A stretch of DNA of 64,000 bases from sequence record OZ196212.1; one strand, 5' to 3'. The notes under the pieces were generated by a model that saw only the letters and a list, made by a program, of their open reading frames with translations, was not told where the DNA came from and ran no database searches. A program made the position numbers and the translations under genes. This document shows positions 1 through 56,059 of this stretch, piece after piece; position 1 is the first letter of the stretch; every line of letters starts with the position of its first letter.

Positions 1-874
1 CCTGATCTTGATGCTTAGTGTTGCGCATAGCAGGTGCCATACGACTAGCAATAGTTTGCAAGTCAATTGGGATATCTAATGTACCAAGTGCGATACGAGC
101 AACGTCTGCCACTTCAGGCACACTATGATTCGCTGCGCCTTGCAAGCGTTCACGATATACACCGCGAGTTGCCGGGGTTAGAGCAGGCATCACCATTGGC
201 GTGTTCGGAACACGTTTCGCTGGTTTGTCTTCGATCCATTCAGCTTTCACTTCGTCGTGAAACTCTTCAAATCCCGGTACCATATCAGCCGTAACGATAA
301 TCGAGCGTGCAGTCGCGATGTCTGGTTCTTTAGACATTTGAGCAGCTAGAATATTGATAGTCTTTTCTTCAGACTCAAGTAGCTTATCGGTATTGTATCC
401 CGGTTTGTTGATAACGAAGAAGCTGAAATCTTCAGCCATTTCATGATCGCCAACGTTTAGAATCTTAGTTGTTTCACAGCCGTAGCGTAGTTTCTTGAAT
501 AGCGTTTTGATACGCATATCGAACATCTTGCCACTGCCTTTCTTTTGTACGCGCATTGATACAGCGTTTGCACGAACTTTCAGCATGAATTCTTGAACAA
601 GTTTAACCAACGTTTCTTGGAACTTTTGTTGATCACCCATATCACGAATAGTTAATCCGCCTTTTTTACCGCGCATTGCAGTAACAGTACAGAACCAAGC
701 GCGTTTAGTACGGTCGCCTAGCCCCGATTTTGTTTTACTTGTAAACGTGACAACGACATCTTTGGTCTCACCAGCCATATCGATGACAAAGTAACGATTG
801 ACTTTGGTCGAGCGAGCCGGGTAGTAGTTATAAGTTGAAGTTGCTGTCTCATTTAATTCTTGAAATCCAATCAT
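1..874 (-). CDS. Alt-like internal head protein, N-terminal part (runs off the window edge)
   Basis: Hand-translated open frame from ATG 874 to position 1, absent from the ORF track: MIGFQELNETATSTYNYYPARS...; LNE cleavage-like leader; loose resemblance to the T4 Alt N-terminal region; CATAAATA upstream. Catalytic domain not visible. Confidence 0.5.
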   Translation of the reverse strand, partial: MIGFQELNETATSTYNYYPARSTKVNRYFVIDMAGETKDVVVTFTSKTKSGLGDRTKRAWFCTVTAMRGKKGGLTIRDMGDQQKFQETLVKLVQEFMLKVRANAVSMRVQKKGSGKMFDMRIKTLFKKLRYGCETTKILNVGDHEMAEDFSFFVINKPGYNTDKLLESEEKTINILAAQMSKEPDIATARSIIVTADMVPGFEEFHDEVKAEWIEDKPAKRVPNTPMVMPALTPATRGVYRERLQGAANHSVPEVADVARIALGTLDIPIDLQTIASRMAPAMRNTKHQDQ

Positions 875-906
875 TTTTTAGACTCGCCTTATTGAAAATA
901 TACCTG

Positions 907-914
907 TATTTATG
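907..914 (-). promoter_or_regulatory. T4-type late promoter variant CATAAATA
   Basis: 1 mismatch to TATAAATA, 32 bp upstream of ATG 874. Confidence 0.6.
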
Positions 915-966
915 AGAGTGCATTAACACCCATCTAGAACTATTTAAACTTTTTTTACGAAAGTGG

Positions 967-1014
967 TTGCGTCGAATTCAAAATACGCCTAATATCTCTA
1001 CATCGAAACGAAAC
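967..1014 (+). promoter_or_regulatory. sigma70-like early promoter
   Basis: TTGCGT-17-TAATAT followed by ATCGAAACGAAAC. Confidence 0.7.
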
Positions 1015-1038
1015 ACACTAATCACAAGAGAGAAAATT

Positions 1039-1557
1039 ATGACTAAACTTAACGATCAGACTGCTACTAACGCTCAAATCGCTGAATTCTACGGTATGAC
1101 TCTTGACCCATCGGGTATGCCTTACGCACTTGACGCGAAATCACGTCGTCATTACATCACTGATTTGCGTTCAAAGTTTCGTAAAGAAGCAGCTAAGAAG
1201 ACTTCACGCAAAGTAGCTACTGCGACTCGTAAAATTGAATTACCAAGCGCAGAAGAGCATTTAGCGATGCTGAACACTGATTTCACTGAACATCAATGGT
1301 TCATTCGCGAATCTCAGCCGGGTCTTGATATCTCAGAACTTGGTTTACGCTTCTACTTCATCGGTGGTGCTAACATTCATCAACTGAACATTCGCACAAA
1401 ACACTTCTCAAACAAAGAGTTAGAGAATTTCTATGCGAACAAGAAGATTCTGAAAGGTCACAAGGGTACTGGTTCAGTCACAATTGGCTCTCTTTCATAC
1501 GAAGAAGTTGTTCAAATCGCACAAGATATGATTGAAAAGTCAGAAAGTGTGATTTAA
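1039..1557 (+). CDS. hypothetical early protein
   Basis: ORF; start moved to ATG 1039 behind GAGAG. Confidence 0.75.
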   Translation: MTKLNDQTATNAQIAEFYGMTLDPSGMPYALDAKSRRHYITDLRSKFRKEAAKKTSRKVATATRKIELPSAEEHLAMLNTDFTEHQWFIRESQPGLDISELGLRFYFIGGANIHQLNIRTKHFSNKELENFYANKKILKGHKGTGSVTIGSLSYEEVVQIAQDMIEKSESVI

Positions 1558-1575
1558 GTCACGAAAAAGTAGTGT

Positions 1576-1611
1576 TCGGGTATTGACAGTAACATCGAAA
1601 TACCCGATAAT
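1576..1611 (+). promoter_or_regulatory. early promoter inside a 9-bp inverted repeat
   Basis: TTGACA-17-GATAAT; arms tcgggtatt 1576-1584 / aatacccga 1599-1607. Confidence 0.75.
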
Positions 1612-1656
1612 AAACACATCAAGACGACATAGACAACTACTTAAAGAGAGAACATT

Positions 1657-2639: not shown

Positions 2640-2882
2640 ATGATAACAATCTACACAATTCCTAACTGTGACGGTTGCCGACATGCAATCGCACTCTGTA
2701 AGTTCAAGAAAATCCCTTTCGAAGAAATATCCTTAGATTCTCAGTCTAAAATCGATGCACTTCACCAACGTCTTGGCGGCAATCGAAACATTCGAGTCCC
2801 GTTAGCTGTTGACTCTGACGACACGTATATCGGTCACTTACCAGAGCTTAAACAGTACGTTGATAGCAAGCTGTATAAATAG
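2640..2882 (+). CDS. glutaredoxin
   Basis: YTIPNCDGC (CxxC), VP motif, 80 aa. Confidence 0.85.
   Translation: MITIYTIPNCDGCRHAIALCKFKKIPFEEISLDSQSKIDALHQRLGGNRNIRVPLAVDSDDTYIGHLPELKQYVDSKLYK
2874..2881 (+). promoter_or_regulatory. T4 late promoter TATAAATA
   Basis: perfect consensus upstream of gp24-like gene. Confidence 0.85.
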
Positions 2883-2939: not shown

Positions 2940-3839
2940 ATGACTGTATCTATCGGTAACGGTTTACCAGACATTGTTACAGTTCAGAAACGACTATATC
3001 CGCTTATCTTTACGGAAATTGTGTCTGAACAACCAACAAAACAGCCAATCGCGACTGCGTACGGCTTTAAAGCTATCAAAGACACTGACGATTCAAGTGG
3101 CTGGGAGCAGTGGAAATTCTCGCTTGACCGTTGGTCTGCGACTGCCGAAGCAACAAAGCTAAAAACTGATATCTCTCTTGAAGCAATTCAAGACATGGAA
3201 GCACTTGGGCTTGGCACTGACTTAATCGTTGACTCACTGGCTGATCAAGCGGCAGATGACATCAACACGAATATCATCACTGCACTGAACGCGATTTCAA
3301 CGCTTGGCACTGCGGTTAGCGTTAACTCAACAACTGGTAAATTCAACAAAGGTCGTGAGCTGTATGCTCTTGCACACGTCGAAGCTGCTAAACTTGAAAA
3401 AGAGACTGGTTGCCAGGGTTCGTACATCGTAGCGGGCGGAGAGACATTTGGTCTAATCGTTGGTTCTGGTATGGCGAAACGCATTGGTGAATCGAACGTT
3501 TATAAATTAGACTCTGGTCTTAAACTTGTTCATGACAAGTACGCAACGTCTGAATACTTCACGGTTGGCGTTAAGAAAGAAATGTCTGATTTCGAAATCT
3601 CAAGTCTGATCTTCAGCCCGTACAATTTCGATGGCGAAACTGGTGGCGGTATTGCTTATCAGCACGAAGGGCAAGACCCTAAGACATTCAACCCAATCTT
3701 CGCGATTATCGCACGATACGCACTGACAGTTGCACCGCTTGAATCTGATCAAACGGGCGCTAGTGATATCGATTGGGACGATCTTGGTGACAAGGCTAAC
3801 AGTTCTAAGCTATCAGCAACATTTGCCGTAACGCTATAG
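2940..3839 (+). CDS. 24: capsid vertex protein gp24-like, short form
   Basis: LIFTEIVSEQPTKQPIATAYGFK, KLKTDISLEAIQDMEA, ADDIN, RYAL match T4 gp24/gp23 blocks. Confidence 0.8.
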   Translation: MTVSIGNGLPDIVTVQKRLYPLIFTEIVSEQPTKQPIATAYGFKAIKDTDDSSGWEQWKFSLDRWSATAEATKLKTDISLEAIQDMEALGLGTDLIVDSLADQAADDINTNIITALNAISTLGTAVSVNSTTGKFNKGRELYALAHVEAAKLEKETGCQGSYIVAGGETFGLIVGSGMAKRIGESNVYKLDSGLKLVHDKYATSEYFTVGVKKEMSDFEISSLIFSPYNFDGETGGGIAYQHEGQDPKTFNPIFAIIARYALTVAPLESDQTGASDIDWDDLGDKANSSKLSATFAVTL

Positions 3840-3847: not shown

Positions 3848-4369
3848 ATGAAAACACATTATGTAGATAATAAAGCTCTATACGCATCGATTTGCGAATG
3901 GAAAGAAGAAATGAAGAACGCTGAAGAAGGCGTTTTCGTGCCAGTCCCTGATTTTGTGGCAGTTAGTATCATGAAAATCAGCGAGAACTTGACCCGTCGT
4001 TACAACTTTAGCAATTACACGCAGCCGTGGAAAGAAGAAATGGTTGGCGATGCGATTGAGCATTGCTTACGCTACGTGAAGAACTTCGACACTGAGCGAT
4101 TCAAAAACCCACACGCGTATATCACTCGTATCTGTTTCAATGCATTCGTGCAGCGTATCAAGAAAGAACGCCAAGATACAGCGATTAAATATAAAGTATT
4201 CTTGTCTGATTCGTCAAACTACACCGTTGAGGGTGAAGACGTTGATTTCGACTTCATGCAGCAAATGCTAGAACGCGTGAACTCATTCGACGAATCTCGC
4301 AAATCAAACAAATCTGAATCTGCCCCTAGCAAGAAAGACGATTCGAACTTACAAAAATTTTACGATTAA
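3848..4369 (+). CDS. 55: late-transcription sigma factor gp55
   Basis: HYVDNK, YNFSNYTQPWKEEM, KNPHAYIT..CFNAFVQRIKKE. Confidence 0.97.
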   Translation: MKTHYVDNKALYASICEWKEEMKNAEEGVFVPVPDFVAVSIMKISENLTRRYNFSNYTQPWKEEMVGDAIEHCLRYVKNFDTERFKNPHAYITRICFNAFVQRIKKERQDTAIKYKVFLSDSSNYTVEGEDVDFDFMQQMLERVNSFDESRKSNKSESAPSKKDDSNLQKFYD

Positions 4370-4378: not shown

Positions 4379-5815
4379 ATGTTAGGTACCTTTGACTCAT
4401 TTCTGAGTGAAAATCGCCGTCAAACTCAGGGTGGTAAAATCTACCCTAAGTTTGGTCAAGTATTTGTTGAGCTAGGCACAGCTTCTACCGACTTCAGCAA
4501 AGAAAAGGGCGTTGAAACAACTATCGGTATGATGGAAAAAGCGAATGAGCTTAAAACTATCATGCAAACTAAACTATTCGAAGACAGCAACGTTGACCAC
4601 ACTAAATTCGACATGAATCTAAGTGAAAACGTTTCAGTTATCAACTTGCTAATGGAAGAAGAATTCCTAGCATGTAAGCCGACTGAACTTGCGCAACTAA
4701 AGTCAATGACCACTGTGTCTGAAGCTCGTTTGCCAAGTCTTGTCGTGAAAGGCGGTGAACTTACGACTATCGTTAGCGAAGCAACTAAGCTTGGTTACAA
4801 AAAGTCTGATATTCACGTGATCTTCCCGATGGCTGAAATGAAAATCGAACTTGCTGACAGCGACAAGCTAGTGGTTGAAGCACTATCGTTTGATGGACGT
4901 ACAGCTACTGAAATTCTGGCAATGGGTTCTCGCATTCAACTTGGCGACGTTTACGTAGTGAGCGAGTCCGTTGAGTCGAACGCTGACGTGCTAGGTCTTG
5001 AAGAGATTCGCATCAATCGCATGACGCTTGGCGCTCTTAACCGTCACGTTATGAACTGCTTTGTTGTTAAAGAAGCGGCTGAAACGTCATACGCGCACGC
5101 TGCGGTTAAAGAAATCACTGATCGCCCTGCGCTATCAGGCTTCAAAGCATACGATTTGAAACCAAACGTGACTATGCTTGAACATGCACAAAACGCATTC
5201 TCAAAAGACATTGCTAAAGCTCCGCTTTCTGCAACTGCATGGGAAAAGCTTGTTGATGTGAAAGAAGTGTATTTCGACAATGGTTGGAAACTGAAGCACA
5301 ACAACACAAGTCTTGTTCTAACAAACGCTGAAAACGCTATGCGTCATGGTCGTGTTTGTGAAGAATATCGTGTTGAACTGTCTGAGGCAGGTTATCCGCT
5401 TCTTGATATGATCGCGATGATGGAACGCAATGAAGAAATTCGTTGGGACTGTGCTTCGTTTGCTAAACACATGATGAAATTCGACGGTGCTATCACCCCA
5501 GAACGTCAATCTGTGACAGCATTTACGACTGAATCAGCTTCTAATCGCGTATTCCACCCGCATGTGATGTCTGACCTACGTCCAGTTACTGAAGCGGCAG
5601 ACGACGTTGACAGCTTGATTCGTGCTATCGCGAATGATCAGTTCAGTTCATTCAAGATCAGTCAAGCATTCTCTGAGCAGATGCTAGACCAAGAAACGCT
5701 TTACTCTATGATGGAATCAATCGTTTCTGAAGGCATCGACGTTGACGCTGATGGTGATTTGATCACGTTCAAAGTGAACGCGACTCAGTACCACATTCAA
5801 CTAGATATTAAGTAG
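4379..5815 (+). CDS. hypothetical protein with internal-protein-like leader; possible degenerate P-loop fold
   Basis: MLGTFDSFLSE leader; IYPKFGQV and LGYKKSDIHV recall a phage P-loop kinase-like family, but no GxxxxGK. Confidence 0.6.
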   Translation: MLGTFDSFLSENRRQTQGGKIYPKFGQVFVELGTASTDFSKEKGVETTIGMMEKANELKTIMQTKLFEDSNVDHTKFDMNLSENVSVINLLMEEEFLACKPTELAQLKSMTTVSEARLPSLVVKGGELTTIVSEATKLGYKKSDIHVIFPMAEMKIELADSDKLVVEALSFDGRTATEILAMGSRIQLGDVYVVSESVESNADVLGLEEIRINRMTLGALNRHVMNCFVVKEAAETSYAHAAVKEITDRPALSGFKAYDLKPNVTMLEHAQNAFSKDIAKAPLSATAWEKLVDVKEVYFDNGWKLKHNNTSLVLTNAENAMRHGRVCEEYRVELSEAGYPLLDMIAMMERNEEIRWDCASFAKHMMKFDGAITPERQSVTAFTTESASNRVFHPHVMSDLRPVTEAADDVDSLIRAIANDQFSSFKISQAFSEQMLDQETLYSMMESIVSEGIDVDADGDLITFKVNATQYHIQLDIK

Positions 5816-5821: not shown

Positions 5822-6472
5822 ATGGCTAAATCATTAAACGATTTTCTGACTGAAGTTCAGAAATATAGCTCGGCAGCTACATCTATTCGCGGTAAAGAAG
5901 TTGCCGCGTTAGTTAAACTGTTCAAAGCGGGCATGTTTGTACCGGGTGGCACTGCGCTAGATTACGGTGCGGGTAAGTACGGTCGTAATGCTGAATACTT
6001 ACGTGGCGAGGGTGTTCGCACTTACGCATACGACAAGTTCAACGGTACATCGGCAGACGGTTGGGTTGACGTGAGTCTAACAATCCCAGCGGGTCAAATG
6101 TTCGATACGTCGTTCACGTCGTACGTTCTGAACGTAGTTCCACAAGAAGTCGAAGCTGAAATCATTCGCGAGATTGAATCACTTACGACTGGTAAAGTGT
6201 TCCACATTACACGTGGTTCTGACATCACTCAAACGGTATTCAACGTTATCAGTGGTAAGTCTAAGAACGCAGTGATGATGGAATTCCTTGAAACTGAGCA
6301 ACCAGATTTGTACGCTCAAGTTCAAGCAGGTGAAAACTTGAAAGCAGTAGCTAAAGAGATCGCGACTCGCGGTGTCGTTACAGCTAAAGACAGTTTCCAA
6401 CGCATTCCTGACCTTTCTCAGTACGGTTACAAACGTTCTGGTTCTGGTGCATCGATGGTGTGGACAAAATAA
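5822..6472 (+). CDS. class I SAM-dependent methyltransferase with internal-protein-like leader
   Basis: ALDYGAGK motif I, acidic YAYD, TSYVLNVV; MAKSLNDFLTE leader. Confidence 0.8.
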   Translation: MAKSLNDFLTEVQKYSSAATSIRGKEVAALVKLFKAGMFVPGGTALDYGAGKYGRNAEYLRGEGVRTYAYDKFNGTSADGWVDVSLTIPAGQMFDTSFTSYVLNVVPQEVEAEIIREIESLTTGKVFHITRGSDITQTVFNVISGKSKNAVMMEFLETEQPDLYAQVQAGENLKAVAKEIATRGVVTAKDSFQRIPDLSQYGYKRSGSGASMVWTK

Positions 6473-6603: not shown

Positions 6604-7050
6604 ATGATCTATATTCAAACTAGCAACATCCTATCTGACGACACTCTTGGCTTTGCGCTTGGTGGTGCCCCTCGTCTCGATACTTTGCCAGAAAAAGAAC
6701 GCAATAATGTTCTTCTCAAAGCACTCGAAATCAAACTATATGAACGTCTGCCGTCAACTGCTGTATTCGATCATCTACTTCAAAACTCTATCCCGTTCAT
6801 CGCGATTCTGAGCGATATCGAAGAAATTGCTATGCAGCAATCGATTTGGTTCGAAGCAATTTCGAAGAACAAAGGTATCGATATCATGTACACTGCGATG
6901 TCTGACGTTGAACACAGCGAAGACACGATGCTAATTGCTGAAGATCGCGACGCTCTAATTCGTCAAGGTCAAGCAGGTGGTCGTATTCTACCATTTAGCA
7001 CAGAAACGCAGATGCCATTCATCATCGAGACGCTTAACTTACCTCAATAA
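6604..7050 (+). CDS. hypothetical protein
   Basis: ORF with RBS behind two promoters. Confidence 0.8.
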   Translation: MIYIQTSNILSDDTLGFALGGAPRLDTLPEKERNNVLLKALEIKLYERLPSTAVFDHLLQNSIPFIAILSDIEEIAMQQSIWFEAISKNKGIDIMYTAMSDVEHSEDTMLIAEDRDALIRQGQAGGRILPFSTETQMPFIIETLNLPQ

Positions 7051-7059
7051 GGAATCATA

Positions 7060-7434
7060 ATGCAAGAACAGACACCATTAGCTCAAGACACTGACATCGG
7101 CGAAGCAGTCGCTGACCCTGAAGTTCTTGAGTATCTTGAAAAGCTAAAGCAGCATCGCCAAGAAACTATCGAACGCGAAGCTAATCGTCGCATCAAGAAA
7201 AACAAGCGTGAGATTAAACGTCTGCACAAACACGCTCAGGAATGTCTAATCAGTGACAATAAAGACGGTTACATTTATGCTATCGGTAAGCTGCGTAAAC
7301 TAACTGGTCATGTTGTCGGTGATGATGTGCTTGAAACTCTATGGCAAACAAGTCGTGAGCAAGTACAAAAGATCGCTGCTTCATTCGCTGAAGCTCAAGC
7401 AAACTTGCCTGAAGGGCAAAATTTCAGTCAATAG
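7060..7434 (+). CDS. T4 a-gt.4-like conserved protein
   Basis: IKKNKREIKRLHKHA..YIYAIGKLR..LW.TSREQ. Confidence 0.75.
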   Translation: MQEQTPLAQDTDIGEAVADPEVLEYLEKLKQHRQETIEREANRRIKKNKREIKRLHKHAQECLISDNKDGYIYAIGKLRKLTGHVVGDDVLETLWQTSREQVQKIAASFAEAQANLPEGQNFSQ

Positions 7435-14357: not shown

Positions 14358-14843
14358 ATGGACATCTTTGAACTATTAGCGAAAGGCGAAGAAGCTGAAG
14401 CGAAACAAGCCGAAGATGACGCAGCATACGAAGCAGAAATGAAAGCGGCGAAAGTGAAAAAGCTATCGCCATTTGATTTTCTGAACAGCATTTACATGAA
14501 AGAGCGCATCGGTGGCGAACAGGTATCGCAGTATCAACCATTCATGGTGAATCGCGGTATGTCTAACGGCATCGATACGATTGTACACGCGTATATCATG
14601 GATCAATGCGGTAGTAAGCTACCGAAAGATATGCAGTACGACTACATGTATCACGCAGTTCGTAAAGGCAAGCGTTACAACAAGTGGGCGAAAGAAACGA
14701 AGTACGATTCAGTTGACATGATCATGGAAGTCTATGATTTGAACAAACAGAAAGCAATCGACGTGCTTCATCGACTAACAGAACAAGAACTATTGGATTT
14801 GACTGAATGGTTTGAGTCACGAACCGGGGGCTTAACTCGCTAA
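14358..14843 (+). CDS. 62: clamp loader small subunit gp62
   Basis: SPFDFLNSI, YQPFMVNRGMS, KRYNKWAK; synteny. Confidence 0.9.
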   Translation: MDIFELLAKGEEAEAKQAEDDAAYEAEMKAAKVKKLSPFDFLNSIYMKERIGGEQVSQYQPFMVNRGMSNGIDTIVHAYIMDQCGSKLPKDMQYDYMYHAVRKGKRYNKWAKETKYDSVDMIMEVYDLNKQKAIDVLHRLTEQELLDLTEWFESRTGGLTR

Positions 14844-14877: not shown

Positions 14878-15267
14878 ATGGACATTATTAACAAACTTGA
14901 AATCAAATTGCCAGATGATGATGCATTCTTGAAGATTCGCGAGACTCTTACAAGAATCGGCATCGCAAACAACAAAACCAACACGCTGTACCAATCGTGT
15001 CATATTCTTCAGAAACGCGGTGTTTACTATCTCGTACACTTCAAAGAGCTTCTAGCTCTTGACGGTCGATGCGTAGAGATCACGGCTGAAGACATTGAGC
15101 GTCGTAATAACATTGCGAAGCTACTTGAAGACTGGAGCTTGTGCAGCATTGCGCATCCCGAGTCTCACGAGTTCACGGGCGACAACAAATTCCGTGTTAT
15201 CTCGTATCGTGATTCGAAAAACTGGGAATTGCGTTACAAGTATCGCATAGGCGCTCCTGTCACTTAG
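14878..15267 (+). CDS. regA: translational repressor RegA
   Basis: FLKIRETLTRIGIA..LYQSCHILQKRG.YY.VHFKELLALDG. Confidence 0.97.
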   Translation: MDIINKLEIKLPDDDAFLKIRETLTRIGIANNKTNTLYQSCHILQKRGVYYLVHFKELLALDGRCVEITAEDIERRNNIAKLLEDWSLCSIAHPESHEFTGDNKFRVISYRDSKNWELRYKYRIGAPVT

Positions 15268-15886
15268 ACTTGCAATTGTCAAAGTGGTGACGTGTCATCG
15301 CGCCGCCTTTTTTGCCTTGCTTTTCGCAATGCGGGCATGTGACAACAGGGAGATTCAAAAGAGCTTCGCTTATTTTCTGTGAGTGCTCTTTTGATTTTGA
15401 GACGCCTTTTCGTGATTTTGACATTTTTTCTTTTGTTGCATCACTGGTCGGTTCTCTATTCTCCCATGCTTTTTTAAGATTTTCACGATGTTCGTCGCTA
15501 AATGGGCCGCGCACGATTCCTGTCAGGGTTTGGGATATGGCTTTTGCATGAGCTTCGCGTGCATAACGATAACTATGGGAATTATGTCTCTTATCGTTAG
15601 CTAGTCGATTCCATGCATGTGCCATTTTGTTATTGTTATAAATTTTAAATAAGAGCCAGTGGACTAAGAAGTGTTCTCTTGCAGTGAGTATTACAAGATT
15701 GCTCTTATCTTCTGAATCAATGTCAAATACGTAATCATCACGTTCGATATTCTTGCTATATCTACACATAGACTTGGGTGATATGTGGTGAATTTCTACG
15801 TAGACTGGTGCAGTTGACTTTGTCCATGCTCTTTCTAACGCTCGATTTATAATCTCGTCGTGTATTCTTTTGTAATTCATATGCAT
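15260..15886 (-). mobile_element. free-standing HNH homing endonuclease (NUMOD3 repeats)
   Basis: EIHHISPK..NLVILTAREHFLVH; TKEKMSKSRKG-type repeats; CPHC; antisense, overlapping the regA stop. Confidence 0.88.
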
Positions 15887-15949: not shown

Positions 15950-16471
15950 ATGAACAACGAACGTTTTCAAGAACTATTACAATTCGGTGGCGAATTCGAA
16001 GCTGCCGTTGAGCCGAAGATCGCAAGGGTATTCTGTCATGCAGACCCGATGGCGATGCTTATCAATACGGCTACATCAAAAACAGATGACAAGCATGGGC
16101 GTGGTCAACGTCTGATGTTCTGTCAAGACACATCCGCAAGCTATATGCTACCAGACGTATTTGTTTTCAGTAAAGGAAAGCAGTTCTGCGTCGAAATCAA
16201 GTGTAAAAAGCGATTCTACCGCTATTCTGATGGCAAACTGTATGCTGTTATCGACACGTACAAGGTGCTTGAGTACCTAGAAGCCGTCGAAAAGATGGGG
16301 TTTGATGGTATTTACTATGTATTCGGTGACGAAGAGACTCGTGCAGTCTATTTTGCTCAAACTGAGCAGTCGATTGACATCATTATCGATGAATTCAGAG
16401 AATACAAGAACCCGAAAGGTCAGTTCAAAGCATGGGCAATCGACGAATTACATTCTCTAGGGAAATGGTAG
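15950..16471 (+). CDS. PD-(D/E)xK nuclease-like protein
   Basis: LPDVFVFSKGKQFCVEIK; start ATG 15950 behind GAGGA. Confidence 0.65.
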   Translation: MNNERFQELLQFGGEFEAAVEPKIARVFCHADPMAMLINTATSKTDDKHGRGQRLMFCQDTSASYMLPDVFVFSKGKQFCVEIKCKKRFYRYSDGKLYAVIDTYKVLEYLEAVEKMGFDGIYYVFGDEETRAVYFAQTEQSIDIIIDEFREYKNPKGQFKAWAIDELHSLGKW

Positions 16472-19080: not shown

Positions 19081-19357
19081 TGTAGACGGCATCGCGTTTG
19101 ACGAAGACACGCGAATCATAGACATCGAGGACGGGGCTTTGCCCGTCTTCGTGACCGAAACACCGGTAACGCAAATCAACGAATACAAAGTATGCAACGA
19201 TTGGGTGTTAGATATCGAGTCGTGGCATGTAGGCGATGAAGTTGTGAAGATTACGCTTGGTAATAAAAAGGCAACGTACATGGGAATCGAGCATCCCGCG
19301 AATGTTCTCATCGACAAAGCGCAACTGAAATCATTCTTGCAAGATTTGTTGAAATAA
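19073..19357 (+). CDS. hypothetical protein (TTG start)
   Basis: GGAG 7 nt before TTG; overlaps the gp43 stop. Confidence 0.65.
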
Positions 19358-19360
19358 CGA

Positions 19361-19391
19361 TTGACAGTGTATAGTTTCGGCTATACACTGT
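19361..19391 (+). promoter_or_regulatory. promoter inside a hairpin
   Basis: TTGACA-17-TACACT; arms acagtgtatag 19364-19374 / ctatacactgt 19381-19391 around tTTCGg. Confidence 0.8.
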
Positions 19392-19418
19392 TATTAACTT
19401 AATTGAGAGGATAAAATC

Positions 19419-25068: not shown

Positions 25069-25071
25069 ATA
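25064..25071 (+). promoter_or_regulatory. late promoter variant TCTAAATA
   Basis: 31 bp before ATG 25103. Confidence 0.6.
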
Positions 25072-29052: not shown

Positions 29053-29078
29053 AAAAAAGCCCCTTAATCGGGGCTTTT
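29053..29078. terminator. bidirectional terminator
   Basis: aaaagcccc-ttaatc-ggggctttt between convergent genes. Confidence 0.85.
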
Positions 29079-37280: not shown

Positions 37281-37949
37281 ATGCTAGACAGAAACAAAAC
37301 AAATCCCGAGCTAGGTGCTCAGGTCGAAGCGCATCTTAAATCTATCGGGATGCACACGCCGACTGTTGATAACGGTTTATCTGACGAACAGAAGCGTGTA
37401 CTGCTTGAGAAACACTTCACAACAATCATGGAAACTCTAGGTCTCGACTTGAGCGACGATTCGCTTCAAGACACACCGAACCGATGGGCTAAAATGATGG
37501 TCAACGACTTAATGGCTGGTCTTTCATCGGATTTATTCCCGAAATGTACTGCTGTTGACAACAAAATGAACTACGATCAGATGGTTTGTGAAAAAGGCAT
37601 TAGCGTTCTATCGCAGTGTGAACATCACATTCAGACTATCGACGGGTTCGCGACTGTTGCTTACATTCCAAAACAGAAAGTTCTTGGTCTATCTAAAATG
37701 AATCGCATCGTTGAGTATTTCGCTCGTCGTCCGCAGATTCAAGAGCGTCTTACTGTTCAAATCGCTGAAGCACTCAAGTTCATTCTTGAAACTGACGACG
37801 TAGCGGTATTGATTGATGCTCGACACTACTGTGTGAAAGCACGTGGCGTTGAAGATAGCGGCTCAAGCACTGTCACAAGTCATCTATCAGGCGCATTTCG
37901 TAACGAGCCAGAAGCACGTGCGGAATTTATGTCTCTTTCACGAGGTTAA
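37281..37949 (+). CDS. folE: GTP cyclohydrolase I
   Basis: DTPNRWAKM, SQCEHH, GLSKMNRIV, QIQERLT, HYCVKARG. Confidence 0.97.
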   Translation: MLDRNKTNPELGAQVEAHLKSIGMHTPTVDNGLSDEQKRVLLEKHFTTIMETLGLDLSDDSLQDTPNRWAKMMVNDLMAGLSSDLFPKCTAVDNKMNYDQMVCEKGISVLSQCEHHIQTIDGFATVAYIPKQKVLGLSKMNRIVEYFARRPQIQERLTVQIAEALKFILETDDVAVLIDARHYCVKARGVEDSGSSTVTSHLSGAFRNEPEARAEFMSLSRG

Positions 37950-37952
37950 TGA

Positions 37953-39326: not shown

Positions 39327-39354
39327 CGCCTACGGGCGCTCTTATGAGGTAAAC

Positions 39355-40266
39355 ATGAGTTCAAATTATGATCAAGTGTCGGCTATTGCTGCTGAACACT
39401 TAGGTAAAAAAGCAGGCGATTACAGTGATTTCGTCGATATTGATACAGTACGCCCCGATTTGCTAGTGCCAATCCCGCGTGAGCTGAATCGTACTGACTA
39501 CGACATCACTAATGAAACGTTCGTCGGCTTTGATACATGGCATGGCTTTGAAGTGTCAGCACTGACAGAACAAGGTCTACCCGTCTCTGGCATGGCGAAA
39601 GTCGTATACCCGAGCGATAGTCCGAACATCGTTGAAAGTAAGTCGATGAAACTGTACTGGAATAGCTTCAACATGGCTAAGATTGGTACTGATCGCAATG
39701 GCGTTATGCACGCTATCCAGGTTATTGCATCACGCGACTTGTCAACTATCATCGGTGCACCAGTTCAAGTGACGTTCTTCACTGAGCGCAACACGCATCC
39801 GCATGGTATGACTGGTTATGCTGAACTTGACAAGTACGTTTCTGATGAAGCAGTGTTCGATTCTGAGCAAGGTGCTGATGCTGATATTCTTGTCGCGTCG
39901 CACGTTAAGCGCATGAACGTGTTCACTCCGAATCTGCGTAGTAACTGTCGTGTTACACATCAACCCGATTTCGGTGATTTGTACATCTTCATGCAAGGTG
40001 AATCAACACCAACGGTTGATAGCTTAATGCAATACATCGTGTCTTTCCGTAAAGAGAATCACTTTCACGAAGAATGTGTGGAAATGATCTACAAAGCGTT
40101 GCAAGACAAGTTCAATCCAGACGATCTAATGGTCACAGCGTTGTATACGCGTCGTGGTGGTTGGAATATCTGTCCCGCTCGTGCGTCAAGCATTGAGCTG
40201 TTACCGTCGGCTCTAAGTAGTTCTGCGGTCTCGCACACTAACGGTTCTTGTTTATTCCGTCAGTAA
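39355..40266 (+). CDS. queF: preQ0 reductase, bimodular
   Basis: VESKSMKLYWNSF, NLRSNCRVTHQPDFG, FHEECVE, TRRGG. Confidence 0.95.
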   Translation: MSSNYDQVSAIAAEHLGKKAGDYSDFVDIDTVRPDLLVPIPRELNRTDYDITNETFVGFDTWHGFEVSALTEQGLPVSGMAKVVYPSDSPNIVESKSMKLYWNSFNMAKIGTDRNGVMHAIQVIASRDLSTIIGAPVQVTFFTERNTHPHGMTGYAELDKYVSDEAVFDSEQGADADILVASHVKRMNVFTPNLRSNCRVTHQPDFGDLYIFMQGESTPTVDSLMQYIVSFRKENHFHEECVEMIYKALQDKFNPDDLMVTALYTRRGGWNICPARASSIELLPSALSSSAVSHTNGSCLFRQ

Positions 40267-40322
40267 TAAGAGATATAATGAGCATTCAATAGTGAGTGCT
40301 CATATACTTGAGAGGTTATAAA

Positions 40323-41039
40323 ATGAAAGTAGTATCAGTTCTAAGCGGTGGCTTAGACTCAACAATCCTTACATACAAATTAGTAGACGAATACGGTGCC
40401 GACAATGTGTTTGCATTATCGTTCTTCTATGGTCAAAAGCAGTCAATTGAGCTAGAAAAAGCTAAGTTGACCTGTCAAAAGCTCGGTATCGAGCATCGTC
40501 TAATCGACATTTCATTTCTAGGTGATGTAGTTGCTCCAGTGTGTGCAAACATTGTCGGTAGTGATTTAGCAATGCCGACTATTCAAGACGTTCTAGGCGA
40601 CCCTCAGCCGCCAACTGAAGTCCCATATCGTAACATGCTGTTGAACACAGTAGCATTCAGCTTTGCGCAAGCTAACGGCTGTCAAGCTGTGTACACTGGT
40701 ATTCAAGTGCATGACGCATACGGTTACTGGGATTGCACACAAGATTTCTTAGATGGCATGAATCAGATTTCAAGTCTGAATCGTCAGCATGAGATTGCGC
40801 TTGTTGCACCATTTGCTCAGATGTCAAAAGCAGATGAAATCGCGATTGGTGTTAAGCTTGGCGTGCCGTTCGAAGATAGCTTAACGTGCTATGACCCGAA
40901 CGATGCAGGTGAAAGCTGCGGCAAATGCCCGTCATGTGCTGAACGCATCATGAACTTCGGCAAAGCAGGTATCAAAGACCCTGCACCGTACTCAGTAGAC
41001 GTGCCGTGGGATCAAGTGTTCGCTAAGGCAGGTGTTTAA
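40323..41039 (+). CDS. queC: preQ0 synthase
   Basis: SGGLDS, YGQK, VPYRN, Y.DC, TCY..CGKCPSC; start ATG 40323. Confidence 0.95.
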   Translation: MKVVSVLSGGLDSTILTYKLVDEYGADNVFALSFFYGQKQSIELEKAKLTCQKLGIEHRLIDISFLGDVVAPVCANIVGSDLAMPTIQDVLGDPQPPTEVPYRNMLLNTVAFSFAQANGCQAVYTGIQVHDAYGYWDCTQDFLDGMNQISSLNRQHEIALVAPFAQMSKADEIAIGVKLGVPFEDSLTCYDPNDAGESCGKCPSCAERIMNFGKAGIKDPAPYSVDVPWDQVFAKAGV

Positions 41040-41644
41040 TGTGCGGTCTATTCGCTGCGAAAACTAAAAAGGCGCTAGTTGAACTAGCGCAACATAACAT
41101 GCATCGTGGTTCACGTACGCACTCAGTGACTGGCATTAAAGGCGGTCATTTGTATGTCAATCGATATGACGGTGAGTTCAGTGCTGACAATGTACCAGAC
41201 GGGTATGACTTCTATATCTGTCACGTGCAAGCACCGACTAGTGCTCACGCAAAGGCACACCCCGCAGTTGTTTTACGCTCAGAGGGCAGACGTAACTTTG
41301 CATCATGCGTATGGCACAATGGCATTCTGAAAGACGACTACATGAAAAAGCAGCGATATGATTGGGACACCAGACACATCGCAGACACGTTCCCGCAATC
41401 GCTCGACGAGTACGATGGGACGGTTGCTTGTTTTTACTACGCACTGCGCGAATTAAGCGTGTTTCGTAATGAGATCAGTCCACTGTTCATGAGCGAAGAT
41501 GGCGATGCTTTCAGTAGCACACGAACAATCATAACTCCCGACGCACTTGAACCAAATAAAGTGTTTAACATCGACCTAACGTCGTTTAAAATGTCGCTTG
41601 TTAGAGAGTTCAAAACAGTAGAAAATCCATATTTCTTTTTATGA
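41039..41644 (+). CDS. stand-alone class II (Ntn) glutamine amidotransferase domain
   Basis: N-terminal MCGLF, HRG, HVQAPT, HP, WHNG; coupled to queC. Confidence 0.85.
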   Translation: MCGLFAAKTKKALVELAQHNMHRGSRTHSVTGIKGGHLYVNRYDGEFSADNVPDGYDFYICHVQAPTSAHAKAHPAVVLRSEGRRNFASCVWHNGILKDDYMKKQRYDWDTRHIADTFPQSLDEYDGTVACFYYALRELSVFRNEISPLFMSEDGDAFSSTRTIITPDALEPNKVFNIDLTSFKMSLVREFKTVENPYFFL

Positions 41645-43138: not shown

Positions 43139-44119
43139 CTATTGTGACTGCTCTTCTGCAAGCCTCGCTTGATAATCAGCTTTCGATTCTGCTTCAATCA
43201 TGCTGTAGCCATTCAAACCCTCTGCACAATAACGTCTAAACGTCTCATGATTCAGACCCGCACCGTCAGACTTCGCACACGCTTGTACCGTTCCTGTGTG
43301 TTCTCTACCGTCAGGCGAGACATAACGACGAGGTCGTTTAGTGTTTTCAAGTGTCCACTTACCATCAATCTTGAGAATGTCACCTGAACGCAATCGCGAT
43401 AAGTGACTCGGGAAAAGCCCAAGTTCGATTGCCTGTTGATTCTGATTTGTAATCACTACCGTTTCATTAGTCTCAGTGTTCAGAATCGTGTACGGCTTCA
43501 CTACTCGATGCGCTTGACCTCTACGATGCGCTTCGCGTCGTTCTTCTGTCCATTCTGCCGGAGAGCGACCAATCTCCCAGCCACTGTCTAGATATTCTTG
43601 CACATCGTCAGGCGCAACATATTTGGTTCGTTGCCCGAGTTTATACATCACTTGATGGTCGACTGTGTGTTCGTTGTGAATGAAGTTGCTCTCCATTTCA
43701 AATCTGACCGCGTCTGACACATCTTCCCAACACGCGGCAGTGAAGTTACCACCACACTGTTTGTTCAGATACACGTCACTGCGAACAGCATCAAGTTCGA
43801 TTTGAAGCATCGCTTCAGCAAACAACGTCTTGCCCCATGAATCATGACAAGACACGATTCGAAACTCATCAATCACAATACCCTGTGCGTGCATTTCATT
43901 AACGTGCTTTGAACTACTAGTGTACGATCTCCAATTAGACTCGCGAAACGGCTTCTTTGGTAGCTTCTTGTATGATGCAGGCGTTCTCTTCATAGACACC
44001 CATATTTTCTTAGCACCTATATACTTTTTACCGTTACTCATTGTCAGTACATAGACAAAGCCTAGATATTGTTTAGGGTCGATTTCAAATTCACATACCC
44101 AATGACCATATTCAAACAT
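43139..44119 (-). mobile_element. Seg-like GIY-YIG endonuclease, probably homing
   Basis: GFVYVL..GKKYIGAK, ESNWRSYTSSS, YLNK; antisense; late promoter. Confidence 0.8.
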
Positions 44120-45503: not shown

Positions 45504-45692
45504 TTGAAAAAGCGTCATATATTTCTATTGACGTGCGTGTGTGGAGCAATAGCATACTTCGCTGTGCTATTCTTCGCGGCATTATTGTACGCAGGTACAA
45601 TAGAATTTGCATTATCATTCGTGGTAATCGTATTCATCGCCTTGCTAAATATAGTAAGAGCTGAAATACAAAATAACGACAAAGCTCCGTAA
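45504..45692 (+). CDS. two-TM membrane protein
   Basis: hydrophobic ORF; start uncertain. Confidence 0.5.
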   Translation: MKKRHIFLLTCVCGAIAYFAVLFFAALLYAGTIEFALSFVVIVFIALLNIVRAEIQNNDKAP

Positions 45693-45704
45693 GGGGCTTT
45701 TTTT
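45681..45704 (+). terminator. intrinsic terminator
   Basis: agctcc-GTAA-ggggct plus T-run. Confidence 0.75.
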
Positions 45705-45718: not shown

Positions 45719-46312
45719 ATGAAAAAATTCAACGAGTTCGCGAAAGAACTGGAAGAAGCAGCAACTGACATCGTGTATCACGGTACGTCACTGAGTCGAG
45801 CTATTGAAATATTGTCTACTGACAAGTTCAGATTGAGTGATGCTAAAGGCAGTTGGTCAGATGACACAGACACTGAGATCAACCAGAAGCAAGGCAAAGA
45901 CAAGCGATACTACTTGTCAACTGCACGTAGTGCAACTAGCCCGTACATCAATGACCTAGACACGATGATTGACTCGACCACGGCTGACGTTCTCTTTGTC
46001 ATTGATGGTCGCAAGATTAGCCACAACCACAGAACGAAAGCAGTTGACTACGGTCGCGGTGAATATGCATCGGACTATGGTAATGAGCTTGAAGATCGCG
46101 TGTTCAGCAAAAAGCCAGTGATTGATAATGCCTCTAAGTACATCAAAGAAGCACACGTATGGAAGAAATTCTCTAGCAGTTCGTCACACGGCGAGTCGAT
46201 ACTAGAGAAGTTCCTATCTCAAGCAAAGAGAAAAGGGATTCGCGTGTGGGTGTATGATAATCAACGCGATTGGCAGTCTATGAACAAGAAAAGGGCTGTC
46301 TTCACTCAATAA
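45719..46312 (+). CDS. ADP-ribosyltransferase-fold protein with internal-protein-like leader
   Basis: VYHGTS, YLSTAR, NELEDR; MKKFNEFAKELEE leader. Confidence 0.65.
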   Translation: MKKFNEFAKELEEAATDIVYHGTSLSRAIEILSTDKFRLSDAKGSWSDDTDTEINQKQGKDKRYYLSTARSATSPYINDLDTMIDSTTADVLFVIDGRKISHNHRTKAVDYGRGEYASDYGNELEDRVFSKKPVIDNASKYIKEAHVWKKFSSSSSHGESILEKFLSQAKRKGIRVWVYDNQRDWQSMNKKRAVFTQ

Positions 46313-53490: not shown

Positions 53491-53518
53491 AAAAAAGGGA
53501 GCTATATGCTCCCTTTTT
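53491..53518. terminator. bidirectional terminator
   Basis: aaaaagggagc-tatat-gctcccttttt. Confidence 0.88.
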
Positions 53519-53519: not shown

Positions 53520-54080
53520 CTATTTCTTTTTAGCTGCAAGCGTTTTTGCACGCTTAGTTGCTGTTGATATAGCTTTTAGTTCTTTTTCCATCTTGGCTAA
53601 GTCGCTGACAAACTTCTCTGAGTTCTTGATGTCGCTACGCAGTGCGCCTTTCGATGTCGCGATGTCTAAATCGCTATTCAAGCTCGTACGAAGCTTGTGA
53701 GTCAAGAATGTCGCACGCTCGATGTCTTGCTCGAACTTAGCTACTTTCTTCGGCGTCACTTCAGTGTCTTTGCTTACCGATTGGTACTTTTCAATGCGCT
53801 TCATTAGCTTTTTCAGCTCTTTGTAGTCTTTACGTGCTTGACCGCCTGCGAACAACGCGCCACCAATCAAACCATTGATGCCCATACTAATTGCGCCCCA
53901 CGTTGCCAATGGAATTGCAAGAGCAAGACCGCCAGTAGCTGCACCTGCACCTGCTGCACCAAGAGCACCAATTGTTGCACCTGCAACTGCACCGGTAGCT
54001 GCTGCTCGTTTAGCCCATTGGCTGATTGTTGCCTCATCGAGTGGTTTTACTTCGAACTCGTCGAATGTTTTTAATTCCAT
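53520..54080 (-). CDS. glycine-zipper membrane-type protein with internal-protein-like leader
   Basis: MELKTFDEFEVKPLDE leader; long Gly/Ala hydrophobic segment; basic tail. Confidence 0.8.
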   Translation of the reverse strand: MELKTFDEFEVKPLDEATISQWAKRAAATGAVAGATIGALGAAGAGAATGGLALAIPLATWGAISMGINGLIGGALFAGGQARKDYKELKKLMKRIEKYQSVSKDTEVTPKKVAKFEQDIERATFLTHKLRTSLNSDLDIATSKGALRSDIKNSEKFVSDLAKMEKELKAISTATKRAKTLAAKKK

Positions 54081-54183
54081 GTGAATCCCTTATTAAAAGT
54101 GAGAGAGCGCGACCATCGAACCAATACTCGCAGTGACCGTGCGAAGAAACTCGGTCACACTCCCTCAAAACTGTGTTATATTA

Positions 54184-54191
54184 TATTTAGT
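54184..54191 (-). promoter_or_regulatory. late promoter variant ACTAAATA
   Basis: about 100 bp upstream of ATG 54080. Confidence 0.55.
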
Positions 54192-54311
54192 GACAACTAT
54201 TAATAAGAATGTCGTTTATAGCTCATTTAACTGAAAATAGTTGTTGATTAAAGTGTAAAAATGACGTACTATGACGTAAATCAATATGAACTGCTTAAAA
54301 AGGACACAATC

Positions 54312-54740
54312 ATGACATCTACATCAATTATGCGCGGCGCTAACACAGTTGTACGTGAGCTACAAATCTTCTCTGGTGACACATCAACTGTTGTAATTGG
54401 TGCGCCTGCGAGTGGCAAGAATGCAATGCTGCTTGGTATGTTAGCTCAACGCGGTGCTGAGAACTGCACATTTATCTGTACAGAAATGTATGCGCGTAAA
54501 GCCATCAACATGCTACCGCCAAAAGGTTTAGCTGTTCAATCAAATGCATCATTTGAGTCAATTGTCGGTGCTGTGTCGCGTGCGACTGCAAGCGAACGCG
54601 AGTTCATTGTCATTGAACATTTACCATCCAACCCACAGTTCGACGCTGTTGACGTACTAGAGTCAATCGTTCGAGCACATAATAAAAAACTAATCATCGG
54701 CATGCAAGCAGCACGCGATGGTATCACACGAGATCTATAA
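54312..54740 (+). CDS. small P-loop NTPase-like protein (RecA/DnaB-like fragment)
   Basis: GAPASGKN, FICTEM, IVIEHL; TTGATT-17-TACTAT upstream. Confidence 0.6.
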   Translation: MTSTSIMRGANTVVRELQIFSGDTSTVVIGAPASGKNAMLLGMLAQRGAENCTFICTEMYARKAINMLPPKGLAVQSNASFESIVGAVSRATASEREFIVIEHLPSNPQFDAVDVLESIVRAHNKKLIIGMQAARDGITRDL

Positions 54741-54741
54741 C

Positions 54742-55773
54742 ATGAATCAAGAACAAGTATTGTTTAAGAGTCTGTTCGGCTCTAGACTATATGGCACAGA
54801 CACGCCAGAGTCAGACACTGACTACAAAGAAGTCTACATGCCATCCGTAAAACGATTGCTTCGCGGGTTGGCTATCAAAAACAGTGCAGAATCAACGGGC
54901 GACGACTTCAGCACGAATGGCGCTGATGATGAAGACTACGAACGCATCCCTGTTCAAGTGTTCACTCGCGACTATCTAGCAGGTCAATCGTATGCATATG
55001 AGCTTGCTCACTACGCATTGCACGATGGCGTTGAAGTTGACCCAGCATTCCGTAAGCTATGTGCTGAACTTGTTGTGCGTTACTCTACTAGCAATGTGAA
55101 AGCAATGACTGGTTATGCAATGAGCCAAGCGCAGAAGTATGGCGTAAAAGGCACTCGACTGAACAGCATCATGCTATTTCAGAACGCGTTGCTGTATCAT
55201 CACACTGACGATAAGATGAAACTCGGTGACTGTCTTGAGCTATGTGAAGAGCTGTGGGCACTTGCTGCGAAAGACGAGAACATCGGTTTCGAATGGTATC
55301 GCGGTCCCACATCACGCACACCAGAGCAAGTGAAAGATCCTGCGTTCACTGTGTTAGGCAAAGTCAACGGTCTTGAAGTTACATTCGAAGAAGCGTTGCT
55401 GCGATGTGAGAAGCAAGCAGCCAAGTATGGTGCACGAGCTTATGCAGCACGAGCAGCGTCTGGCTCTGACTGGAAAGCTATCTCTCATGCTCTACGTGTG
55501 ATCGACCAAGCTATCGATATCTTGAACGGTAAGATGCTTGAGTTCCCACGCCCGTTAGCGTCGTTCTATCGCGATGTGAAAGCGGGTAAGTACAAATGGG
55601 AGTATGTGTCGAGCGTAATCACAGAACGATTAGAGACGCTTGCAGAAGCGCAAGAACGTACTGAATTGCAATCACACTCGCCGCAACTCGTTGAATCGTT
55701 CTATGAATGGCACGACGACTGGTTAGATGAGTTGTACTTTCCGTCAATTGAAAGCTTCAGCGACTTAGTATAA
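54742..55773 (+). CDS. Pol-beta-family nucleotidyltransferase (T4 NrdC.11-like)
   Basis: FGSRLYGTDTPESDTDYKE, KYGVKGTRL, DWKAISHA. Confidence 0.9.
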   Translation: MNQEQVLFKSLFGSRLYGTDTPESDTDYKEVYMPSVKRLLRGLAIKNSAESTGDDFSTNGADDEDYERIPVQVFTRDYLAGQSYAYELAHYALHDGVEVDPAFRKLCAELVVRYSTSNVKAMTGYAMSQAQKYGVKGTRLNSIMLFQNALLYHHTDDKMKLGDCLELCEELWALAAKDENIGFEWYRGPTSRTPEQVKDPAFTVLGKVNGLEVTFEEALLRCEKQAAKYGARAYAARAASGSDWKAISHALRVIDQAIDILNGKMLEFPRPLASFYRDVKAGKYKWEYVSSVITERLETLAEAQERTELQSHSPQLVESFYEWHDDWLDELYFPSIESFSDLV

Positions 55774-55776
55774 ATA
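55769..55776 (+). promoter_or_regulatory. T4 late promoter TATAAATA
   Basis: perfect consensus. Confidence 0.88.
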
Positions 55777-55804
55777 CAGTTAAACGAACAATGGAGTTTA
55801 ACAC

Positions 55805-56059
55805 ATGACAAAAGGTTTCAATGAATTTCACGCGAAAGGTGAAGTTAAGATTCAAGAGACTACACAAGAGTTCCACGAACGTGTAGTCAAGCACCGTAAA
55901 GTAGATGATGCACGCTACCCTGACCTATCTAAATCTGGTCTTGAGGGTCCGTACACAGACTTGAATGGTAAGGTATACTACTACGATTCTCGTGAGGGTA
56001 TGCATTACGATCCAGATACTGATCTCTACATTACAGCAAAAGACTTACGTTTACCGTAA
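55805..56059 (+). CDS. small late protein with internal-protein-like leader
   Basis: MTKGFNEF..IQE leader; GLEGPY..YYD..G.HYDPDTD. Confidence 0.8.
   Translation: MTKGFNEFHAKGEVKIQETTQEFHERVVKHRKVDDARYPDLSKSGLEGPYTDLNGKVYYYDSREGMHYDPDTDLYITAKDLRLP

Follow-up and report, generated by a model that had tools for sequence, protein, structure and literature searches.

The 64,000-nucleotide (nt) stretch of sequence record OZ196212.1 analysed here, called the window below, comes from a KVP40-like (Schizotequatrovirus-type) Vibrio phage with 99-100% identity to phages D480, D527 and K566, which come from seawater and oysters; the host of a near-identical isolate, 6E35.1a, is Vibrio crassostreae. The window carries genes for an Alt-like protein, gp24, gp55, 47, 46, 45, 44, 62, regA, 43, rnlA, pseT and cd, together with a 7-deazaguanine-type gene cluster, rIIA/B and dda, a content that bears out the early/replication setting ascribed to it in a first-pass annotation. 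Dispersed over the window are nine genes, named here after the position of their first base, whose products begin with short leaders, most of them resembling those of the internal head proteins (IPs) of phage T4. Each open reading frame starts exactly where the first-pass annotation had placed it, as listed here with an arrow after the closing Glu of the leader:

2-874, minus strand: Alt-like ADP-ribosyltransferase (ART) gene, N-terminal 291 codons, continuing past the window edge; leader MIGFQELNE↓T
4379-5815, plus strand: 478-residue acidic protein of PHROG 14490, function unassigned; leader MLGTFDSFLSE↓N
5822-6472, plus strand: 216-residue S-adenosylmethionine (SAM)-methyltransferase-like protein; leader MAKSLNDFLTE↓V
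25103-26791, plus strand: 562-residue very acidic protein (net charge about -84) with a DUF6934-like N-domain and HEAT/armadillo-like repeats; leader MKLKLFENFYQEVRLDE↓I
29084-30139, minus strand: 351-residue HExxH protein; leader MIIIE↓S
34122-34988, plus strand: 288-residue protein with a DUF6934-like N-domain; leader MKFSEYQTELNE↓AFDRP
45719-46312, plus strand: 197-residue basic protein with a possible ART-superfamily (Tpt1-like) fold; leader MKKFNEFAKELEE↓A
53520-54080, minus strand: 186-residue basic protein with a Gly/Ala-rich hydrophobic segment at about residues 26-80; leader MELKTFDEFEVKPLDE↓A
55805-56059, plus strand: 84-residue protein; leader MTKGFNEFHAKGEVKIQE↓T

In GenBank records and PHROGs the candidate proteins are labelled hypothetical or of unknown function, and searches of Pfam, PDB sequences and PADLOC returned nothing above threshold. 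No paper on them was found in the literature searched, a search that did not extend to the paper by Miller et al. (2003) on the KVP40 genome, and the same literature yielded nothing relevant on capsid targeting in KVP40. The capsid targeting sequence (CTS) of T4 was reportedly described by Mullaney and Black in 1996. It comprises 10 residues, of which positions 4 and 7 serve targeting and positions 8 and 10 processing, and the protease gp21 cleaves after L/I-x-E, Alt shedding a 7-residue propeptide (PMC9026906). The leader of IPII and IPIII, MKTYQEFIAE↓A, was read from the T4 record; that of T4 Alt, (M)MELITE↓L, is shorter and agrees with the propeptide of the review.

For genome-wide tests the rest of the genome was taken from D480 (OZ195777.1), and orthologues were compared in KVP40, F86 and 1.081.O. 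Under a loose rule, [LI]xE within the first 20 residues, 28 of the 108 window genes (26%) were positive against 18% of internal 20-residue windows. Because so slight an enrichment does not discriminate, which bears out the caveat in the first-pass annotation that (L/I)-x-E alone is common, we dropped the loose rule as evidence and defined a strict motif after the published T4 CTS, in which two aromatic residues, at i and i+3 (i being at most 7), enclose an acidic one and are followed by [LIV]xE within about 17 residues. All nine candidates possess the closing [L/I]-x-E, a gp21-type site, and six of them (4379, 25103, 34122, 45719, 54080 and 55805) carry the strict motif, so that the aromatic-x-(E/D)-aromatic core attributed earlier to most of the leaders is indeed present in the majority. 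The Alt-like protein (FQEL) and 5822 (LNDF) match in a relaxed form, Leu replacing one of the two aromatics, and the 30139 leader, MIIIE, is without the aromatic core in the D480-like phage, its relatives having MIIFE. The leaders measure 5-18 residues and, apart from that of 30139, where this applies to the relatives only, show two hydrophobic/aromatic residues spaced as CTS positions 4 and 7, with the register shifted by 1-2 residues in several candidates.

Genome-wide, 8 genes among 418-425 matched the strict motif, compared with about 1 (0.9-1.1) expected from shuffled N-termini and 1.5 from internal rates, and none of 1000 composition-preserving shuffles of the N-termini gave 8 such genes. 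The identical script, run on T4 as a control, returned 5 of 259 genes, namely those for IPI, IPII, IPIII, gp61.1 and gp24.2. The last two are not among the known internal proteins of T4 and have CTS-like leaders: gp61.1 (54 residues; NC_000866 18966-19130, minus strand) starts MKTFKEFIKE↓D, and gp24.2 (NC_000866 109650-109928, minus strand) starts MEQYDLYENESF...LRE. A tenth candidate from the window, 15950-16471 (MNNERFQELLQ...), was rejected since its closing site is not kept in orthologues.

The leaders are kept as a pattern while their residues drift between KVP40, F86 and 1.081.O. Those of the orthologues of 5822 (MKQFCNFLAE↓V, MKTFNTFFETLHE↓A, MSKKFDVFMESITPVAE↓G), 25103 (MKLFTEFYQE.., MKKFRNFYSE..), 54080 (MELKTFDEFKNSDELKE↓A in KVP40; leader form ...FDEFKNSDELKE↓A) and 55805 (MQGFKDYFKKGEVKLQE↓T in KVP40) vary in sequence and length, with both hydrophobic residues and the final [LIV]xE retained. 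The Alt-like leader reads MIGFQQL[TN]E in KVP40 and 1.081.O, that of 4379 is retained in KVP40 and F86, and the 30139 leader is MIIFE[SN] in all relatives. The closing site is kept in the orthologues from all three phages, with 4379 in 1.081.O (E to A) as the sole exception.

Wider families place the closing Glu at the edge of conserved domains. For 5822 we found 58 homologues, of which about 20 have precomputed PF13489 (Methyltransf_23) assignments. About 38 of the 52 alignable ones carry a 9-12-residue leader ending in [LIVFM]xE (MKQFSEFLSE↓A, MKLRDFLTE↓D), and about 12 begin at the conserved core with no leader; a leaderless copy lies on a 190-kb PolA-type phage contig, and one leader-bearing metagenomic homologue has CATAAATA 17 nt upstream. 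The 5822 protein contains a motif-I-like LDYGAGKYG, and its 1.081.O orthologue is annotated as a SAM-dependent methyltransferase. The methyltransferase listed in the first-pass annotation thus has PF13489 in many homologues on its side, while the 5822 protein itself stays below threshold (E 0.098; the 1.081.O orthologue reaches E 8e-5 and 22.8 bits against a cut-off of 27).

The N-domain of 34122, which has three paralogues elsewhere in the genome, belongs to a DUF6934-like family of 93 representatives. The domain is N-terminal in 39 of them, and in about 38 of these [LIVFM]xE directly abuts a conserved AFD(K/R)P. The leaders in front of it are 5-14 residues long and of interchangeable types (MKFSEY..L.E, MIIFE.., MKTF[KQ][EQ][FY].xE as in MKTFQEFFTE), and one such gene adjoins an Inh-like gene and has GATAAATA upstream. 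Over all families, xATAAATA was seen closely 5' of two leader-bearing metagenomic homologues, one of them this neighbour of the Inh-like gene. One paralogue, at D480 61121, starts MIIFE↓AFSRP and so links the short leader type of 30139 (MIIFE/MIIIE) to this junction. The N-terminal 115 or so residues of 25103 proved homologous to the 34122 N-domain (hhalign 87%, E 4e-6), and the nine genes are therefore not all 'otherwise unrelated', as had been supposed. Nor did the designation of 25103 as DNA-mimic-like hold beyond its negative charge (net -84): we found no relation to known DNA mimics, and its sequence points instead to a DUF6934-like domain followed by HEAT/armadillo-like repeats, its 1.081.O orthologue being annotated 'Armadillo-like helical'. 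A relationship between the N-terminal region of Alt and the DUF6934-like domain was considered and found unsupported (hhalign 2%, E 0.024). The DUF6934-like domain also occurs as 3-7 internal repeats in metagenomic proteins of 800-1470 residues (P0086, P0091, P0092, P0097 and P0098), some such repeat proteins having GNAT acetyltransferase domains as well; the searched literature held nothing relevant on DUF6934.

In the 30139 family, HELQH, HEINAR and E5 are invariant in 18 homologues, which have N-extensions of varying length, one of them MKFTEYTIITE↓N. An AlphaFold2 (AF2) model of 30139, with a predicted local distance difference test (pLDDT) score of 82, shows residues 1-6 as coil and 7-33 as helix. 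It is only comparison with relatives that argues for MIIIE as a leader. The description of 30139 as a zincin was borne out as far as the invariant HExxH goes and not in its fold, as a search of the model against the PDB gave nothing better than E 0.16 and no Pfam match was obtained. A second HExxH-type candidate of the window, which has no leader, is the product of an early-strand 272-residue gene at 1657-2475, whose 1.081.O orthologue is annotated as SprT-like (zincin) family.

Only two homologues of 45719 were found, and the distant one (P0003) begins exactly after the 16-residue leader. The AF2 model, built from 3 sequences (pLDDT 67.5, predicted template-modelling score (pTM) 0.71), had yeast Tpt1 (7yw4) as its top Foldseek match (E 8e-4, template-modelling (TM) score (target) 0.67), with SopF second at E 0.5; no Pfam or PDB sequence match was obtained, and we tentatively place the predicted structure in the ART superfamily. 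Homologues with and without the leader are known for three cargo domains, and the Glu-to-core junctions in the 45719, 5822, 34122 and 30139 families are as expected of a cleavable, transferable address label.

The Alt-like protein matches PHROG 802 at E 6.8e-24 over residues 5-239, in agreement with the D480 annotation. By homology, then, the ADP-ribosyltransferase of the enzyme-rich payload proposed in the first-pass annotation is supported, the window holding its N-terminal part and the catalytic C-terminal part lying outside; the other enzymes of that payload are tentative, since the 45719 model has a pLDDT of 67, 5822 scores below threshold and 30139 has no fold match.

Each of the six NNTAAATA sites reported earlier as late promoters (907-914 minus, 2874, 25064, 30171-30178 minus, 54184-54191 minus and 55769) is present. 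These sites and the associated hairpins are:

907-914, minus strand: late-promoter-like CATAAATA, 40 nt 5' of the Alt-like start (38-39 nt in KVP40 and 1.081.O)
2874-2881, plus strand: TATAAATA, 5' of gp24 (2940-3839), with gp55 at 3848-4369, both genes being so named in the KVP40 annotation
25064-25071, plus strand: late-promoter-like TCTAAATA, 39 nt 5' of 25103, kept in KVP40 and F86
26795-26820, plus strand: terminator-like hairpin closing the 25103 cassette
29055-29078: bidirectional terminator-like hairpin between 28440-29048 (plus) and 29084-30139 (minus)
30171-30178, minus strand: late-promoter-like CCTAAATA, 39 nt 5' of 30139 (37-38 nt in KVP40, F86 and 1.081.O)
45644-45700, plus strand: GCTAAATA (45644-45651), then a terminator-like hairpin (45681-45700), both 5' of 45719
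53492-53518: bidirectional hairpin, 3' of 54080 (minus)
54184-54191, minus strand: ACTAAATA, 111 nt 5' of 54080
55769-56081, plus strand: cassette of TATAAATA (55769-55776), the 84-residue gene (55805-56059) and a hairpin (56066-56081)

NNTAAATAcag stands 36-40 nt 5' of the ATG of the Alt-like gene, 25103, 30139 and 55805, a spacing that resembles that before gp24, a spanin gene and two homing endonuclease genes; TATAAATA lies 31 nt upstream of the KVP40 orthologue of 55805. Leader motif and late-promoter-like site co-occur over the whole genome, an association that the first-pass annotation had suggested looking for: TAAATA is found 12-125 nt upstream of 5 of 8 strict-motif genes and of 45 of 417 others (Fisher p 8e-4). 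A TAAATA-type site also precedes all five minus-strand genes of the window, and about half of the TAAATA sites sit closely 5' of a same-strand gene. Hairpins close four of the self-contained cassettes that had been proposed (25103, 30139, 54080 and 55805), the fit being poorer at 54080, where the site is distant. Neither 4379 nor 5822 has a TAAATA of its own; both follow gp24 and gp55, and since no terminator-like site was found on the plus strand between 2881 and 6472, the site at 2874 could also drive gp55, 4379 and 5822. Judged from such motifs, TAAATA is well placed for late expression of the Alt-like gene, 25103, 30139 and 55805, less so for 54080, and read-through may serve 4379 and 5822. 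The promoter link of 34122 and 45719, already described as weak, is so: no site occurs near 34122, and at 45719 a strong hairpin, ending 18 nt before the start codon, intervenes 3' of the nearest TAAATA. T4 ipII and ipIII have no TAAATA within 80 nt either, and a missing site is therefore not disqualifying for 34122 and others.

Several further features of the window concern these sites. TAAATA is strongly under-represented: base composition predicts 61.5 occurrences over the two strands and 22 are present, a deficit compatible with selection against stray late promoters. Perfect TATAAATA sequences lie 26-38 nt upstream (15912, 44157) of the homing endonuclease genes at 15260-15886 and 43139-44119, both on the minus strand, so that these genes seem to be transcribed late. 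The gp24 head vertex gene encodes 299 residues against 427 in T4 and has moved out of the head cluster to a position directly 5' of gp55, with its own site at 2874; the KVP40 annotators remarked that their gp24 'may contain an internal deletion'.

The head machinery lies outside the window, and its annotation comes from the near-identical D480, which encodes a portal, gp67-like and gp68-like proteins (the latter a scaffold), a gp21-type head maturation protease (6680-7315), gp22 and gp23. The gp68-like protein and gp21 start with similar short leaders, MKFITE and MELLIE. The tRNA gene region, close to 57A and 57B, where ipI is found in T4, holds a late gene for an 82-residue protein that starts MKTLQEFLAE↓A and is near-identical at this point to the T4 IPII/IPIII leader. 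Counting the gene for this 82-residue protein, seven genes with CTS-like leaders were noted outside the window in D480, with TAAATA upstream of most:

D480 17549-18145, minus strand: CTS-like gene, leader MIEFLTE
D480 19241-19726, minus strand: CTS-like gene
D480 61121-61981: CTS-like gene, the MIIFE↓AFSRP paralogue
D480 137772-138482: CTS-like gene
D480 190331-191437: CTS-like gene, leader MKKLNTFMEELQALNE, 368 residues, weak PARP-domain match
D480 209948-210172, minus strand: CTS-like gene, leader MSDKTFDQFMSQLDE
D480 214498-214746, minus strand: CTS-like gene

The pattern of a leader on an apparently late gene would thus extend to at least seven genes beyond the window.

Based on these findings, we consider it probable that most of the nine genes encode T4-type internal head proteins. 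In silico this is well supported for most of them, the promoter or site evidence being weaker for 4379, 34122 and 45719, and the leader set appears best explained as the known T4 mechanism with new, larger and partly enzyme-like cargos. The N-terminal leader, its hydrophobic or aromatic residues set as far apart as CTS positions 4 and 7, would dock its cargo on the scaffolding core during prohead assembly; the gp21-type prohead protease would then cut after the Glu of the closing [L/I/V]-x-E, and the mature protein would be kept in the head with the DNA, ready for ejection into the next host. The leader would be a portable module that phages of this lineage and their metagenomic relatives have joined to unrelated cargo domains: an Alt-like ART, methyltransferase-like and HExxH proteins, a DUF6934-like domain, alone or followed by an acidic HEAT tail, a possible Tpt1/ART-fold protein, a Gly-rich hydrophobic protein and the 84-residue protein. 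Many leader genes would come with a late promoter of their own, and frequently with a terminator, inside otherwise early regions. For these proteins we infer targeting, cleavage, virion retention, ejection and any counter-defence or takeover role.

Several observations weigh against this interpretation. Because the motif definition was sharpened with the candidates in view, the enrichment p-values err somewhat on the optimistic side, a bias that does not touch the T4 control or the family comparisons. MIIIE alone is non-specific, and as the clamp-loader subunit gp62 (window 14358-14843) begins MDIFE by chance, the short MIIFE-type pattern is not diagnostic by itself; the invariant E5 of the HExxH family could equally be part of its fold. 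The closing residue of 4379, E11, is Ala in 1.081.O, and late-promoter-like sites are missing at 34122, cut off by a hairpin at 45719 and 111 nt away at 54080. Further, a 62-kDa acidic protein and a hydrophobic one with a basic tail beside its Gly/Ala-rich stretch are unlike the small T4 IPs, and the searched literature offered neither a virion proteome nor N-terminal sequences nor a transcript map for any KVP40-like phage.

Three other explanations of the leaders deserve consideration. It is conceivable, though unlikely in our view, that the leaders are genuine and that several of their bearers serve in assembly or as core accessories, in the manner of gp67, gp68 or Inh, to be degraded, expelled or retained rather than delivered as effectors. 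The similar leaders of the phage's own gp68-like protein and gp21 are in keeping with this, as is the fact that DUF6934-like paralogues and CTS-like genes adjoin Inh-like genes in a head accessory region; the large acidic 25103 protein is closer to a scaffold or charge-balancing component than to an enzyme, and T4 core proteins are cut to fragments that exit the head (PMC9026906). Most candidates, however, have a single N-terminal site, in contrast to the many [LI]xE of gp22, several bear enzyme-like signatures (HExxH, methyltransferase motif I, an ART-like fold), and Alt, the sole homologue of known behaviour, is ejected in T4.

We regard it as quite improbable that the leader is instead an N-terminal helix with another shared function, be it to bind a chaperone, membrane or host target or to silence toxic enzymes as a propeptide, and is cleaved yet unrelated to capsid entry. 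AF2 did model the 45719 leader, at low confidence, as a helix detached from the domain, several cargos resemble potentially toxic enzymes, and the Gly-rich 54080 protein may be membrane-active; but the leaders agree in length, spacing and closing site with the experimentally defined T4 CTS and are coupled to late promoters typical of virion genes, and no result points to an alternative shared partner. Finally, that the N-terminal likeness reflects translation-start selection for A/U-rich codons (Lys, Phe, Asn, Glu, Ile), or chance, with no packaging role, is very improbable: F, L, I and K are slightly commoner in N-termini than in protein interiors, loose [LI]xE is barely enriched and gp62 shows that a chance match occurs, but shuffles of each N-terminus's own composition yield about 1 match against the 8 observed, the Glu falls exactly at the conserved-core junction in two large families, the leader is there or missing as a unit among homologues, and the same pattern picks out the proven T4 IPs.

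The proposal of packaged internal proteins can be set beside known systems. In T4 IPI-III, too, the leader is about 10 residues long, places hydrophobic or aromatic side chains at positions 4 and 7 and closes with an [L/I]-x-E that gp21 cuts; it is all that the unrelated mature parts have in common, and the genes lie scattered in variable regions. Their capsid targeting has been reviewed (PMC9026906, PMC3012670). The two sets differ in that the cargos here are mostly 22-62 kDa rather than 8-20 kDa and include several enzyme-like proteins, the leaders vary in length and register, many of the genes have their own late promoter and terminator, and the proteins here are known from sequence. The Alt homologue shares with T4 Alt a short L-x-E leader and here has a late promoter; its leader is MIGFQELNE rather than (M)MELITE, and C-terminal processing is known for T4 Alt.

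Beyond T4-like phages, DarB of phage P1 has methyltransferase and helicase domains. As is proposed for the candidates, DarB, which is packaged in the head along with partners, is a large enzyme-like protein that an N-terminal signal puts into the capsid; its 30 N-terminal residues suffice for targeting of a reporter (PMC9024508), and it is delivered with the DNA, which it protects. Were a methyltransferase-like protein packaged here, it would be functionally analogous to DarB, with no relation to it in sequence; P1 packaging is stepwise and helper-dependent, and no Glu-specific removal of its signal has been described. The giant phages phiKZ, 201phi2-1 and SPN3US also have many head-internal proteins, some of them enzymes, that are cut after Glu by a gp21-related protease, at a motif given as S/A-x-E for phiKZ-like phages, and some of these inner proteins are ejected (PMC9026906). 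They belong to another lineage with another P3 preference, and their propeptides are long and often multiply cut, with no short portable 10-residue leader defined.

At window positions 37281-41644 lie genes for a folE-like GTP cyclohydrolase, a tRNA-guanine transglycosylase-like protein, a QueF-like reductase, QueC and an aminohydrolase-like protein (names taken from the 1.081.O and D480 annotations). This 7-deazaguanine/queuosine-type cluster suggests hypermodified DNA, which in turn would make injected anti-restriction proteins plausible.

By injecting proteins a phage makes its opening move against host defences, and only a handful of such proteins are known in T4: IPI, directed against GmrSD, Alt, and IPIII, whose target is unknown. 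If the leaders act as they do in T4, KVP40-like phages, which attack Vibrio species in aquaculture settings and possess DNA modification genes of the 7-deazaguanine type, would deploy a larger and more enzyme-like set of effectors in the first minute of infection. More tentatively, and as a possibility rather than an expectation, the leader may be a general address label in KVP40-like phages and their uncultured relatives, whose virions would then contain a dozen or more proteins, among them enzymes such as a methyltransferase-like protein, ART-fold proteins and an HExxH hydrolase, that act before any phage gene is expressed. Were that so, the leader with its Glu junction would be a signature for mining injected effectors from genomes and metagenomes and a cheap route to such proteins in other T4-like phages, and would already mark two unrecognised, widespread cargo families, the DUF6934-like (E↓AFD(K/R)P) and the leader-bearing Methyltransf_23-like proteins. 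The leaders would also represent natural variants of the capsid-targeting tag that is in use for loading foreign proteins into T4 heads.

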